64,000 nucleotides of DNA from Saccharolobus solfataricus P2 (GCF_000007005.1 NC_002754.1), one strand, 5' to 3'. Shown: positions 4,177-42,710, counted from the first letter of the stretch. The notes: generated by a model not told the origin, from the letters alone. A program made the numbers and translations.

Positions 4177-6309
4177 TTATCTCCTTCTTAATCCTAGTAT
4201 TACTCCTATTATTACTATGATTATAACTACTACTGCTATTATGGCATATAGTGTAGTATTGGATGATGAAGTTACAGTAGTAGTAACAGTAGCTGTGGTG
4301 GTACTTACGGATGTGGATACACTTGTGGTAGTTGAAACACTTGTGGTAGTAACAGTACTTGTGGTAGTGCTAGTTGTAGTAGTTGATGTAGTTGTGGTAG
4401 TGCTAGTTGTAGTAGTTGTGGTTGTTTGATACACGAATGGGTCATTGGAAGTATACCAACTTGAAGGAACTTGTGAAGTATAATACCACCAAGGCTCAGG
4501 AACAGACTGATTAACCAAATGTAAGGCTAAAACAACAGGTAAAGGAGTTGAGGGAAGACTGGTCCATGGGGGAGCCGGCCAATAATAGTTTTGCTGAGTT
4601 GGCCAACCAGTAACAGTATTGTTAACATACTCATACCACTCTGCGCCGTATACTAGAGCAATGGAAGGCATATATTTTATCCATAGAGCAGCTAGCTTAT
4701 TTACTATACTATAATAGGCATTATCGTTTATGCTGAAGTTACCATTTGCCCAGTTCACAAGTTGTTCGAACGTTGGATGGATAATTGATAAATTAAACCT
4801 TTCTATGTTATAATATGTGCTATTTCCTATCGGTGTTATGTTGCCGGGGGAATTCCAATAACCATACAAATACCCAGAAAGTGGTTGTATAGGAGTAGGA
4901 CCGCTAATTAAATCCCACATTAGTCCCATCCAGTAATTGCCAGTTTCCATGTAATTATACCATGTTGTAAACGGTGGTGTTTGTACTTCCACAGTTATGC
5001 CTATTTGCTTCAAATCTTGTGCAATTAAAGTTAAATCGGCGTCCCAATCAGTCCATCCGGCTACCGTAATGATGGTCATTGCTGGTACTGCAGTACCATT
5101 TGGTGTAATTAGTTGGCCATTAACTAATTTATAGCCGTGGGATTCAAGCAACTGTAATGCAGCAGTAACATTACCTTGAGGTGGAGCGAATTGCTCAGCA
5201 AGTTGCAACACCGACGAATTTATATATTGTAGCTGTTGTGGAGGTAATGGAAGAGGCGTAGTTGCTGGCGGTTCGTATCCATATTCGCCCAAATAGTATA
5301 TTGCTGTTCTATTGATCGCAAGGCTTATTGCTTGTCTTAAAACTGGATCGGATAAAGGCCATTTTAGGTTATTGAGTGTCAACATTGTTGGAAATCCAGG
5401 AGCAAAATAGTAATGATAGTGTAGAGGATCTTTTGCCACAAATTGCTGTTGTATATTTGGTTCGAATAGTCCAGCCCAAGTTATTTGCCCATTATTTAAT
5501 GCAGTATCTGCTTGAACATTACTAGGATATGATGGATAGAGTAAGTATTTTATTCTGGGTTCTCCCGGCATCCAATAGTGTGGGTTGGCCACTAGTACTA
5601 TTTCTTGCGGGCTGAAACTATATAGCATATAAGGTCCAGTACCTATTGGATTTGTATTAGGGTATGTGAATGGATTTCCAGTCTTGTTTAGTCCTACATA
5701 TGTTCCATTTGGTAATTGCTCTACTGGGAATATTTTACCCCATTGTGCTGGGTCCACAGGCCATTGCTCCAAAATAGTATACAATACCATTGGCGTTACT
5801 CCAGGTTTAAATACTATTTCTAGCTCATATGGGTTTATTATTGTCATGTTAGCTATTTGATTAGCTGAATATCCCAATTGTGGGTATGCTTGTTCTAACG
5901 CTAATGTGTACCATACTGCTGTAGCGTTAAATGGTGTGCCGTCAGTGAAGTATACGTCATGCCTTAAGTATAATATTAATGCCAATGTTTGTACCTTAGT
6001 ACCATTTGGCAAGTTAACATAACCGGTAGTAAATGTCCAATTGGTGGCTAACCATGGAATAATTTGACCACTTAGCGAATTAACTAGGGCTAATGGTTCG
6101 TAAATAAGCCAAATTAGACCTCCGGGTAAGGCTGGAGCGTTCCATGGATTAAAGTTATCTTGCCATACTATACCCGGACTAGGCATAATTACCATGCTTC
6201 CTTCTGGTTGTACTGATGTTGACTGTGATAGTATTGGCATTGCAAATATCCCTATGCTTATTACCATTAATACTGTAATTATTGTAGAAATTATCTTATA
6301 CCTTTTCAT
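4177..6309 (-). CDS. ABC substrate-binding protein, peptide/nickel family (probably oligosaccharide-binding)
   Basis: Signal peptide, family-5 motifs (YEPL, W.FT, GTGPY), Ser/Thr-rich linker, C-terminal TM helix and RRR tail. Confidence 0.9.
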   Translation of the reverse strand: MKRYKIISTIITVLMVISIGIFAMPILSQSTSVQPEGSMVIMPSPGIVWQDNFNPWNAPALPGGLIWLIYEPLALVNSLSGQIIPWLATNWTFTTGYVNLPNGTKVQTLALILYLRHDVYFTDGTPFNATAVWYTLALEQAYPQLGYSANQIANMTIINPYELEIVFKPGVTPMVLYTILEQWPVDPAQWGKIFPVEQLPNGTYVGLNKTGNPFTYPNTNPIGTGPYMLYSFSPQEIVLVANPHYWMPGEPRIKYLLYPSYPSNVQADTALNNGQITWAGLFEPNIQQQFVAKDPLHYHYYFAPGFPTMLTLNNLKWPLSDPVLRQAISLAINRTAIYYLGEYGYEPPATTPLPLPPQQLQYINSSVLQLAEQFAPPQGNVTAALQLLESHGYKLVNGQLITPNGTAVPAMTIITVAGWTDWDADLTLIAQDLKQIGITVEVQTPPFTTWYNYMETGNYWMGLMWDLISGPTPIQPLSGYLYGYWNSPGNITPIGNSTYYNIERFNLSIIHPTFEQLVNWANGNFSINDNAYYSIVNKLAALWIKYMPSIALVYGAEWYEYVNNTVTGWPTQQNYYWPAPPWTSLPSTPLPVVLALHLVNQSVPEPWWYYTSQVPSSWYTSNDPFVYQTTTTTTTSTTTTTSTTTTSTTTSTVTTTSVSTTTSVSTSVSTTTATVTTTVTSSSNTTLYAIIAVVVIIIVIIGVILGLRRR

Positions 6310-40175: not shown

Positions 40176-40541
40176 AAGCTATTAAAAAACACAAGATATC
40201 GTAACCGAAACGAATTTTAAAGTTAACTGAGAGATTAAAGAAGATTTACCATCTTTATTTAACAGAGTCAACTAGCTGATAATAATTTACCATCCCTAAC
40301 TGTTAAATAATGTCTTTCTAATCAAGAAGTTACTTAAAGTTTCTGTACGTACATTAGCTTCGTTTAAGAACTCACTCCCATTCGCTCTTTCTATAAACTA
40401 ATTTTAATAACCTTTCCTCTATTTACTTTCCCTCAACAATGTTCTTCAGCCCTTTCAACACACTCATTGTTTTCCAAAAATAGTTTACCTATAATCTCCC
40501 GCTACAGTATACTTAAATATCTTACTGATTATTTTCACAAT

Positions 40542-41321
40542 ATGAGGGATAAAATAATTTTATTTTTAGGAGGTGTAGCCTTTGGAACAGCTGCAATATT
40601 TGTAAAATTTTGTACTATAACTCCTCCTTTTATAACTTTTCTAAGATTTTTAATAGCAGGGATTCTTCTTCTCCCATTCGTGTCAAAGAGAAGAAGGAAA
40701 ATCATCTTAAAACGATTTATCTTACCATCTCTGTTTCTTTCTCTTCACATGTTATTCTTTGTTTCTAGTGTATTTCTAACTACAATAGCTTCATCAACCA
40801 TTCTAGTCTCTACTAGCCCGATATTTGCAATGTTATTTAAGAAGAAAATTGATCCTTTCATAATTATGGCAATCCTAGGAATATTTATCATGAATTTTAA
40901 CACTTCGTTTGGATATATTTTTGGCAATGTACTCGCTATACTTTCAGCAATTTCATTTGCAATTTACACATATTTCCTTTCTAGACTAGATTATGATTCT
41001 CTTTCAATCATACCTATTATTTATCTAATATCCTCTATTTTTATGATCCCAGTCCTTCCATTTTACGGTTTAGGTGATATTAACCCAATATCAATATTAG
41101 CTGTACTAGGTTTAGTGTTAGTTCCAACTCTTATTGGCCATGGCTCAGTCATATATACTGCAAATAAGTTGCCGATCAGTTTAGTTACTTCTGCGGAATT
41201 GATTGAACCAGTTATGGCTACAATATTAGCAATACCTATATTTCACCAAATACCAGATACCCAAGAACTCATAGGAGGAACAATAACCTTGATTTCCATA
41301 TATTTTGCATTCAGACGATAA
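40542..41321 (+). CDS. EamA/DMT family transporter
   Basis: FGTAAIFVK, FLRFLIAG and LIEPV motifs; ATG 40542 preferred. Confidence 0.85.
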   Translation: MRDKIILFLGGVAFGTAAIFVKFCTITPPFITFLRFLIAGILLLPFVSKRRRKIILKRFILPSLFLSLHMLFFVSSVFLTTIASSTILVSTSPIFAMLFKKKIDPFIIMAILGIFIMNFNTSFGYIFGNVLAILSAISFAIYTYFLSRLDYDSLSIIPIIYLISSIFMIPVLPFYGLGDINPISILAVLGLVLVPTLIGHGSVIYTANKLPISLVTSAELIEPVMATILAIPIFHQIPDTQELIGGTITLISIYFAFRR

Positions 41322-41617
41322 ACCATTCTATGTTACTATATCAAAAGAGTGCCTTATTATCAACATTAGAGAAGACACTAAGGAAGGGTGTGAAGTATGA
41401 CGCCCTTATGAAGGGCATCCCCATTTCTCGGTAATGGTTTTTACTTCTTAGAGAAACGTCGATCCCCCAGCAGAAGAAATTCCGCCGAACGAAACCGTTC
41501 TGGAATACCCAGTACAGAAGATTGATTAGGTAGGGGCGTTATATATAGGTTGCACTCCAAAGCTTAAGCTCCCCTAGTCCTAAAGCACTATATGCTCTAT
41601 GCCTCTTATATAAAACA

Positions 41618-41639
41618 TATTACTCAGATCTGAGTAATA
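41618..41639. repeat. Perfect 22-bp palindrome at the IS left end
   Basis: TATTACTCAGATCTGAGTAATA. Confidence 0.95.
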
Positions 41640-41758
41640 CAGATCTGACTGGGGTGTAGGCCGTTACGCCTCTTGGGCTCAAAGCTCGGTTGTTAGCTTG
41701 GCTACCTCCCAATTCGAACCGGAAGTTGGGCAAAAAGCCCGAATAAGGGTGAGTATAC
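41634..41758 (+). ncRNA. Putative guide/bridge RNA in the 5' non-coding end
   Basis: Contains exact copies of the left flank (GCCTCTT 41668-74) and right flank (ACCGGAAG 41718-25), each just before a GGGC-N5-GCYC hairpin. Confidence 0.65.
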
Positions 41759-42377
41759 ATGGAGGCCCCAGTTTCAGGAATAGATGTATCAAAAGATAAA
41801 TTAATTATGTATTTCCAAGACAAATACTACGAGTTTGCTAATGATAGGCAAGGGTTTGAGGAGATAAGGAAGATCTTGCCTAAGGGTTGCAAGATAGGTA
41901 TTGAAAGTACTGGAGTTTACCACGTTAACCTAGCAAAGTACTTGATGGGCGAGTATAATGTTAGGATTATTAATCCCTTCATACTCAAGAAGTTCAAGGA
42001 TTTTAGGGGGAAGAAGAGCGACAAGAATGATGCTAGCAGAAATAGTTGTAAGTATGGGTAGTGGGTTTACAACAAGTGAGGCTAGGGAGTTAACTAGCCA
42101 ATGGGATTTTGTTACTAGGAGTATTGCTAGGGTTAAGAATAGATTGAGGAGGGATTTGATACTTTTAGGCTATAAGGATAGTTTATCCAAGAAAAACTTA
42201 GAGGAGGTTTTGAGGGGTGGGGATAGTATAGTGTTGTCTGAGGTTTCTCTTGGAGGAGTTGGAGAGGCTTGAGGCTAGGAAGATTGAGGATAGGCTTGGA
42301 GAGTTAGTTCCCAAGGATAGTTTGATCTTCACGATTCCGGGTATTGATGAAATTTTGGGTTGTATAATTTTAGCAAG

Positions 42378-42710
42378 GGCGTTCAGTAATAAACCTTTTG
42401 GTCAAACTTCAAGCATAGTGTCAACTAAGGTTGCCACGTGGGTCCTTTCAACCCACGTGGCGATTCGGGGGAGGGCTTACTTATTTAGGCTTATAAGGCC
42501 TATTATTATACCAAACACTCCAAACAACCCTTGCCAACTTCCTAGCCAAAGCAGTGTACAACTTATATTCGTGAATTTTATCACAATGTTCAGTCCGACG
42601 GTAGGGGTGAGTCACGCCTCTCGCCGAAGATTTCACTTCAATTTCTAAGTCGACCATGTTTCCCCAGCCGAGGATTATTTTCCTCCTCGGCTAATATAAC
42701 CTATATAGGC
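42378..42710 (-). mobile_element. 330-bp non-autonomous IS110 mini-element (internal deletion derivative of the ISC1190-like family)
   Basis: Both ends are homologous to the 28955-30126 element; GGC duplicated at 42378-80 and 42708-10; removal restores AGC AAG GGC ATA TCT AGG (SKGISR). Confidence 0.88.
42481..42657 (-). CDS. 58-aa residual ORF of the mini-element (in-frame N/C fusion)
   Basis: MVDLEIEVKSSARGVTHPYRRTEHCDKIHEY-KLYTALARKLARVVWSVWYNNRPYKPK; expression unknown. Confidence 0.4.
   Translation of the reverse strand: MVDLEIEVKSSARGVTHPYRRTEHCDKIHEYKLYTALARKLARVVWSVWYNNRPYKPK

Follow-up and report, generated by a model that had tools for sequence, protein, structure and literature searches.

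The chromosome of Saccharolobus solfataricus P2 holds a 330-bp unit in which the two ends of an IS110-family element are joined around the last 27 codons of its recombinase gene, and the question raised by this locus is whether such a unit moves as a guide-only element or is what remains of a larger one. It lies in a window of 64,000 nucleotides (GCF_000007005.1, NC_002754.1, one strand; G+C content 35.5%), the window being the whole stretch of DNA analysed. A sequence-only reading had taken it for a MITE-like derivative that carries its own targeting RNA and borrows a recombinase in trans. Our analyses make it very probable that the unit is the fossil of an RNA-guided insertion of an ISC1229-group element into the recombinase gene of ISC1190, another IS110-family element, and that it was gutted in place. 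Bridge-RNA guidance has been established for IS621 (Durrant 2024, Hiraizumi 2024), and the rules known from that bacterial element appear to be readable in this archaeal IS110 family.

Anatomy of the element and its ends

The ends of the element (hereafter the mini-element) were set by comparison with seven complete relatives (L042, L046, L048, L049, L050/L032, L051 and L055/56) drawn from isolate genomes and hot-spring metagenomes. It was compared by local BLAST with a full-length ISC1229-type copy in the same window, global MAFFT alignment having misplaced its left part. The features are as follows, a slash marking a junction.

42380..42707, minus strand: internally deleted ISC1229-group (IS110 family) element, 328 bp, made up of left end, last 27 codons and right end (the mini-element)
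28950..30126, plus strand: full-length ISC1229-type relative, recombinase ORF intact (28966-30033), first ~50 nt of the left end missing
42708..42709, minus strand: core CC at the left-end junction (relatives' left flanks differ at -1, CC constant)
42378..42379, minus strand: core CC at the right-end junction (from ~20 right-end loci)
42698..42709, minus strand: left terminus CCTATATAGGTT, the sole exact copy within the window
42563..42564, minus strand: deletion junction GAATATA/AGTTG, placed by alignment to the full copy and the relatives
42481..42657, minus strand: fused ORF of 58 aa, an N-terminal leader overlapping the RNA loops fused in frame to the recombinase's last 27 codons
42432..42462, minus strand: right-end hairpin CGCCACGTGGGTTGAAAGGACCCACGTGGCA, its loop bearing TTGAAAG
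42380..42428, minus strand: conserved right-end terminus; holds the left donor half-site ACTGAACG and a 24-mer that is the same in the window's full copy

On the minus strand, positions 42640-42561 match 28983-29062 of the window's full copy at 80% identity, and 42564-42377 match 29950-30127, i.e. its last recombinase codons and right end, at 78%. The alignments to this copy and to the relatives bear out an internally deleted IS110 element with both termini, as the sequence-only reading had it, and confirm its in-frame fusion to the last 27 codons (58-aa ORF, 42657-42481). The junction is unchanged across all eight sequence variants of the mini-element, and its 30-mer reads AAAATTCACGAATATAAGTTGTACACTGCT. 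Pfam assigned the 58-aa ORF to no family, with a single sub-threshold match to an AsnC-like ligand-binding domain (E = 0.0026, below the gathering score). The DEDD/RuvC-like and Tnp-domain recombinase, which full relatives carry as matches to PF01548 and PF02371, is absent; the window's 355-aa recombinase has relatives that carry the annotations 'ISC1229' and 'IS110 family RNA-guided transposase'.

All seven complete relatives start with CC/TATATAGGTT and finish with TTACTGAACG/CC, except for one variant in ..CTG/CC, and their flanks bear no kinship to each other. Because CC is constant at these ends while the left flanks, terminating in ..TC, ..TA, ..AA and ..TG, vary at position -1 (C, A, A, G), the core of the ISC1229 group is the dinucleotide CC and not GCC. 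Right ends at ~20 loci nearly all read ..CTGAACG/CC and then unrelated flanks, the exceptions being one subgroup with CTGAATA/CC and two decayed stumps that deviate. The mini-element's own termini, CC/TATATAGGTT ... TTACTGAACG/CC, are family-specific, carry the core dinucleotide at both junctions and form no inverted repeats. Its last base is the G at 42380, and the G at 42710 is a host base, the third position of a host Gly codon GGC (minus-strand reading). The clean GCC duplication claimed earlier does stand in the sequence at 42708-42710 and 42378-42380; it is apparent only, because the core CC is extended by the element's terminal G at one side and by the Gly-codon base at the other, and the flanks do not derive from one duplicated target (see below). 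Within the left terminus, CCTATATAGG is at once a palindrome, the right donor half-site and a TATA-like box, and the terminus may act as a promoter; the right-end hairpin is a candidate Cbp1 binding site.

Termini, right-end hairpin and left-end RNA architecture are those of ISC1229 (IS110 family, IS110 group; P2). Positions 2,832,377-2,832,564 of the P2 genome have been listed as a partial ISC1229 copy in a study reporting that Cbp1 binds ISC1229 3' flanks (PMC10883916). That entry covers the right half of the mini-element only (188 bp); the 147-bp left end was not recognised there.

The window's own full copy has the same donor guides and a different target loop. It was considered as the parent of the mini-element and rejected, given an identity of only 78-80%, the different target loop and its truncated left end. 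A complete relative in the same strain lineage (P0049, locus L049) encodes a recombinase that is 68% identical, with the same donor guides. The closest full-length relatives found are ~90% identical to the mini-element in the left end and 93-97% in the right end, the left end being closest to L046/L048 (90%) and the right end to L050 (96.8%, against 93% for L046/L048).

Several rearrangements were seen in the wider group. Homology of the window's full copy to the complete copy L042 starts at CCTAGGGTT, ~28950, and the metagenome contig L031 (3566-3804) has the same truncated left side (window 28850-29090). In L031, the bridge-RNA region lies in its entirety on an inverted segment of ~127 bp between two CCTAGG palindromes. 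Copies that are otherwise ~98% identical differ in the orientation of the inner part of their right-end hairpin (window 30043-30074 compared with L042/L033/L037), GTGAATCCTTTCAATTCAC against GTGAATTGAAAGGATTCAC. The TTGAAAG in the hairpin loop resembles the 3' end of Sulfolobus CRISPR repeats, and Cbp1, reported to bind ISC1229 3' flanks, probably does so at this hairpin.

A bridge-RNA-like left end with a truncated donor loop

A consensus fold was computed with RNAalifold on the left ends of the seven relatives, and the mini-element was aligned to it.

42667..42691, minus strand: 5' stem-loop of the predicted bridge-RNA-like transcript (helix 2 of the consensus, two pairs with compensatory changes)
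42641..42649, minus strand: left target guide CTTAGAAAT, 5' side of the predicted target-binding loop
42624..42640, minus strand: apical hairpin of the target-binding loop, UGAAG..CUUCGG (helix 4, conserved in 7/7 relatives)
42617..42623, minus strand: right target guide CGAGAGG, predicting the target CC/TCTCG
42562..42608, minus strand: truncated donor-binding loop, which stops before columns 154-175 (the 3' strands) of the consensus structure

The family consensus is bridge-RNA-like: two internal loops come after a 5' stem-loop. Pairing holds in 95% of cells, and compensatory changes were counted at five pairs, where slid controls gave 0-2; across these seven sequences, covariation lends the fold moderate support. 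The first (target) loop has the base GUCG with UGAC and the apical stem YUGAAG..CUUCGG. The second (donor) loop has the bases ACCCCUACC with GGUAGGGGU and GUCG with UGAC, and the apical stem UGUGA with UCACG. The 5' side of the donor loop, ACUGAAC, is in the sense of the right end, the guide ACTGAAC being equal to the element's right end at -8..-2; on its 3' side AUAUAGG (ATATAGG in the DNA) pairs, in full copies, with CC+TATAT of the palindromic left terminus.

In its predicted fold and its junctions, the group shares with IS621 the order of a 5' stem-loop and two internal loops, a dinucleotide core at both junctions, and the strand logic by which the 3' side of a loop is complementary to core plus right half-site and the 5' side is the sense of the left half-site. 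It differs in the core (CC, where IS621 has CT), in its archaeal host, in the position of the loops inside the first ~35 recombinase codons and in a left donor guide that stops short of the core; moreover, the mini-element's donor loop is truncated, and the ISC1229 group is known here from its sequences and is not represented by an Rfam model. Rfam gave no match at the gathering threshold over the whole window, nor at E<=1 over 42300-42800. The family's recombinase ORF opens 54 nt from the left tip, and both RNA loops lie within codons 1-35 (P0020-P0049; window 28966-29070). Residues 3-7 and 12-13 of the predicted recombinase are hypervariable because the same bases serve as guides. The N-terminal 35 codons were set aside as a sign of protein-level conservation, the RNA stems being formed by the same bases.

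The sequence-only reading had described a complete left end with 5' hairpin, target loop and most of the donor loop. The hairpin is there, ~5 nt shorter than in full copies, and the target loop is intact, but the donor-loop share was overstated. The mini-element still has the left donor guide ACTGAAC (42588-42594) of that loop, its apical hairpin (42570-42585) and, from the basal stems, the 5' strands. The deletion begins inside the right donor guide, which is altered to ATATAAG at 42562-42568 with a mismatch at a core position, and strips the 3' strands of both basal donor-loop stems, 13 base pairs in all. As modelled, the RNA is an intact target loop with no foldable donor loop and is not a complete bridge RNA. 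The mini-element keeps what are predicted to be both DNA half-sites recognised by the family recombinase, together with the target loop; on this anatomy it cannot direct its own movement, because it has neither a recombinase nor a foldable donor loop.

Guides and their targets

The right guide is decoded as follows: the 7 nt that come after CUUCGG have the form N5+GG, and reading them as reverse complement gives a prediction for CC plus the first 5 nt of the right flank. The agreement is 5/5 in L051 (AAGTGGG, predicting CC/CACTT), in L055 (GCAAGGG, predicting CC/CTTGC) and for the window-type guide TTTCCGG against the flank CC/GGAAA of L026/L031/L033/L035/L040. Left guides are the 9 nt before the apical stem, and match the left flank at 8/9 positions in L050, 7/9 in L051 and 9/9 in L056; three registers were allowed in this scoring, for which the non-cognate null tops out at 6/9. 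A single register fixed for the whole family failed, the guides of L050 and L051 pairing with -9..-1 and that of the mini-element with -10..-2, a shift of one base. Guide-flank agreement is not universal in the ISC1229 group, because L046 and L048 carry the mini-element's left guide next to unrelated flanks (5/9 and 2/9).

For the mini-element itself, the left guide CTTAGAAAT matches the left flank CCTAGATAT at 7/9, above the null maximum, and matches the homologous position of an independent ISC1190-like copy in contig L047 at 9/9. The 6/7 match reported earlier between TAGAAAT (42647-42641) and TAGATAT (42717-42711), both correctly placed in the sequence, is thus real and was understated. 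The right guide had been said to match poorly, and indeed the actual right flank CTTGC agrees with the predicted TCTCG at 1/5. The predicted CC/TCTCG is missing at the mini-element, but directly follows a related right end in metagenome contigs L025/L047, and intact P2 ISC1190 reads CC/TCGCG after the left-flank sequence (4/5). The flank CTTGC is, in turn, the exact target predicted by the right guide GCAAGGG of another family member. The predicted cognate target CTTAGAAATCCTCTCG has no match in the window at up to three mismatches. Elements of the P0044 type were considered as specialists for the second ISC1190 site described below and rejected: their own sites lie outside ISC1190 and their left guide mismatches site 2, only the 5-nt right half agreeing.

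The host gene and its missing 97 bp

The host of the mini-element is a second IS110-family gene, decayed and encoded on the plus strand, which resembles ISC1190 and is split into two parts.

41605 to about 42377-42379, plus strand: ISC1190-like host, 5' part, frameshifted, 80.6% identical to P2 ISC1190 339-1140
about 42707-42710 to 42992, plus strand: ISC1190-like host, 3' part, beginning GISRRGD (tblastn), 90.7% identical to P2 ISC1190 1238-1526

The DEDD_Tnp_IS110 match in the host is a fragment at 41759-42061; ISC1190 proteins are 41-43% identical to the window's 355-aa recombinase. Compared with intact P2 ISC1190, the host lacks positions 1141-1237, i.e. 97 bp with the codons VGD...VSR, exactly between the flanks of the mini-element. 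Because of this gap, the two flanks are two different ISC1190 sites and not one duplicated target; a test for flanks that rebuild one contiguous target (LT-core-RT) failed for the same reason. Site 1 is CTTAGAAAT-N-CC-TCTCG, in codons for SRGISRRG; site 2 is ..ATCACCAA-CC-CTTGC, the second CC lying 97 bp from site 1. A spacing of 97 bp between the flanks in ISC1190 excludes that a 330-bp unit simply inserted into an intact target.

A counterpart was found in contigs L025 and L047, where an ISC1229-type right end (92-93% identical to the mini-element's) is joined at CC/TCTCG to the same 97 nt that are missing in the window; then come CC and 13 nt from the start of a left end. The window thus has the junctions site 1-left end and right end-site 2, and L025/L047 have right end-site 1 and site 2-left end; insertion of family members in the same orientation at both ISC1190 CC positions would be expected to give such complementary junctions. 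The position of L025/L047 is not orthologous to that in the window, and each of the two elements there is truncated as well.

In L025 (reverse complement, 870-1455) and L047 (reverse complement, 759-1345) an ISC1229-type element is present as its 3' half, and its right end is followed by CC, 97 nt of ISC1190, a second CC and 13 nt of left end. The structure lies in a non-ISC1190 context, with an intact ISC1190-like copy 11 kb away on the same contig.

History of the locus

The anatomy, the agreement of guides with targets, the occurrence at one locus and the absence of the 97 bp were read directly. The order of events is reconstructed and not observed, because none of the genomes examined has a full-length element or an empty intact ISC1190 at the exact locus of the mini-element. 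A full-length element at this site in other strains, suggested earlier as a sign of decay after insertion, was not found as such; the nearest finding is that in L025/L047 a longer element has its right end at this ISC1190 position and the 97 bp are retained.

In the proposed history, an element with the target loop CTTAGAAAT / CGAGAGG would have integrated at its cognate site 1 in ISC1190 and left the present left junction. By the route that we favour, at about an even chance, a second family member would then have inserted at site 2 in the same orientation, and both recombinase genes would have been lost, together with the 97 bp, in one illegitimate deletion that began just past the first copy's donor loop and reached codon ~330 of the second. 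Two insertions and one deletion would make the simplest history. This route fits the mildly discordant nearest relatives of the two ends (L046/L048 on the left, L050 on the right), and it fits the right flank CTTGC as the exact target of another member's right guide. By a second route, rather doubtful, the element would have inserted once and been deleted internally, and the 97 bp would have gone in a separate deletion anchored on the right end. By either route the 330-bp unit would have arisen in place and then been passed on by vertical inheritance or by exchange together with its locus.

It is very unlikely that the host ISC1190 lost the 97 bp first and that a full-length element or the mini-element then entered the composite site by half-match recombination. 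Insertions of this kind have been reported for IS621 (bioRxiv 10.64898/2026.08.31.748434), and the family itself offers an example in L050, whose flanks match its guides at 8/9 on the left and 1/5 on the right. However, such a history needs an earlier deletion ending exactly on two CC dinucleotides, and leaves unexplained both the second CC as a left-end junction in L025/L047 and the identity of CTTGC with another member's predicted target.

In REY15A, HVE10/4 and CP046616 (S. islandicus), a further 633 bp of the host ISC1190 beside the mini-element's right end are deleted (L012-L014 from position 4281; window 41742-42377). The breakpoints are two CCCTT repeats, one of which consists of the core plus the first three flank bases.

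Distribution and the case for mobility

The 58-aa ORF falls into a 90%-identity cluster of seven sequence variants, all traced to one orthologous locus with the order EamA, ISC1190 relic, mini-element, ISC1190 relic, PIN/MazE. This locus occurs in S. solfataricus P2 and the 98/2 lineage (exact look-up of the ORF: CP033241 and ACUK01) and in S. islandicus L.D.8.5, L.S.2.15, REY15A and HVE10/4; ~20 Yellowstone and other metagenome contigs carry the mini-element at the one locus. Scanning metagenomes with a conserved right-end 22-mer returned 23 loci, three of mini type with identical flanks and the others full copies or 3' stumps elsewhere; in a set of genome contigs that evidently does not include this sequence from the window's own species, the 22-mer found only a Stygiolobus 3' stump. 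BLASTN gave no match in plasmid and phage collections, and neither a protein query nor a left-end 17-mer gave one in viral contigs. The genomes and metagenomes searched showed no second site, the DNA-level genome scan covering one genome per species, such that copies with a disrupted ORF in unsampled strains would escape it. The sequence-only reading had named beforehand two findings that would together refute its MITE-like interpretation, a single copy in all genomes and a full-length element at this site in other strains; the first of these, one orthologous locus, is what the genomes searched contain.

That the mini-element inserted as a 330-bp unit, at a target chosen by its own guide and with recombinase supplied in trans, is accordingly not supported and highly unlikely. 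Both of its DNA termini are preserved and equal those of full copies, its target loop is intact with a left guide that matches the left flank, and its donor guides are common to family members, so that a helper could recognise its ends. Precedents also exist: donor-arm-only excision has been described for IS621 (bioRxiv 10.64898/2026.08.31.748434), and MITEPpu9, the ssr9 module of ISPpu9, is a MITE-like element linked to the IS110 family, present in eight copies, some at independent sites, and forming minicircles (PMC12288879). Like the mini-element, MITEPpu9 is a short IS110-family derivative with IS ends and an RNA gene and without recombinase; unlike it, the mini-element occupies one fixed site and shows no sign of movement. 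A second left-end-to-3' fusion (L020) is also known. Against mobility stand the single locus across genomes and metagenomes, flanks that lie 97 bp apart in the intact target with a right flank that agrees at 1/5 with the element's own right guide, a donor loop that cannot fold, and a divergence like that of a pseudogene, with no visible constraint. Short non-autonomous IS derivatives are familiar in the same organisms: the Sulfolobus MITEs SM1-SM4, described by Redder, She and Garrett in 2001, are multicopy derivatives of DDE-type ISs with terminal inverted repeats. None of SM1-SM4 is known to be IS110-derived.

The L020 fusion (5807-6286; ENA ERZ27249306 k141_1349) is a second deletion derivative with the same left flank and left end as the mini-element. 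It joins GCATATAGG/AGTGGG in frame to the last ~78 codons, with a breakpoint within 3 nt of the mini-element's; the right end matches at 87% identity, and the flank beyond it differs (CCAAATTTTGTAA). Both this fusion and the 633-bp deletion could stem either from recombinase action at pseudo-sites or from microhomology.

Divergence and the case for a retained function

Between the window and the REY15A/HVE10-4 lineage, the mini-element is 94-95% and the ISC1190 relic 94% identical, against 99.2-99.9% in flanking genes and ~99% in flanking intergenic DNA. The mini-element diverges as fast as the adjoining dead ISC1190, and no constraint is visible. Its substitutions fall in stems as well as loops, with C to A in the apical stem in L.D.8.5 and several in REY15A. 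The left and right target guides (LTG and RTG) are unchanged in all eight variants, as expected by chance for 9-nt and 7-nt guides at 1-6% divergence.

These observations make co-option of the stump very unlikely, whether as a stand-alone target-loop RNA steering a helper recombinase to ISC1190 or through the right-end hairpin as a Cbp1 site affecting chromatin or neighbouring genes. Separate target-loop and donor-loop RNAs do support IS621 recombination in vitro (PMC11208158), strong Cbp1 binding has been reported at 3' flanks of partial ISC1229 copies in P2 (PMC10883916), and the mini-element persists, with both guides unchanged, across S. solfataricus and S. islandicus. Nevertheless, its overall divergence equals that of the adjacent pseudogene, substitutions strike stems, the constancy of the guides needs no selection, and Rfam holds no match. 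Least probable of all is that the stump acts as a target-loop-only guide whose transcript would pair in trans with an intact ISC1229-type donor-loop RNA and recombinase and steer insertions into ISC1190 recombinase genes; were this true, it would be a guide-only hitchhiker or an anti-ISC1190 weapon, and two later deletions anchored exactly on the right-end core would be traces of recombinase acting in trans.

A decayed remnant gutted in place is thus the reading retained. In a comparison of window positions 40467-46114 with L004, L012-L015 and L019, S. solfataricus and several S. islandicus strains agree at 99-100% in genes and in intergenic DNA, and at only 92-97% in both IS relics. Conserved surroundings with diverged relics suggest that the locus was exchanged recently or that the relics underwent gene conversion by paralogous IS copies.

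Significance

The mini-element is an ordinary decayed IS remnant, half of it already catalogued, and not a new kind of element. What is new is modest: the left half is assigned to the same relic, the guide code of the family becomes readable, and one ISC1229 subgroup appears to be programmed against a conserved stretch of the recombinase gene of ISC1190, a rival in the same IS110 family. IS4321/IS5075 (IS1111 group) reportedly target the ends of Tn21-family transposons, and so would be another case of an IS110/IS1111 superfamily member with a specific target in another mobile element. The target of the ISC1229 subgroup differs in that it falls within the coding sequence for the recombinase in another IS110-family element; the evidence for this target is comparative only. 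The locus and its relatives also provide candidate natural examples of half-matched junctions and end-anchored deletions, which bear on the off-target behaviour of bridge recombinases.

Two minor observations concern the surroundings. Directly beside the relic, window positions 43113-43719 encode a toxin-antitoxin pair of a PIN-domain and a MazE-type (AbrB-fold) protein, which is identical in many strains, the exact PIN sequence being indexed in 84 blocks of the collection. Downstream of the window's full copy (30127-30145), and likewise in L042, L050, L020 and L051, the right flank shares the motif CCAAnTTTGTAA(A) despite different guides; it may be an ancestral or preferred target sequence.
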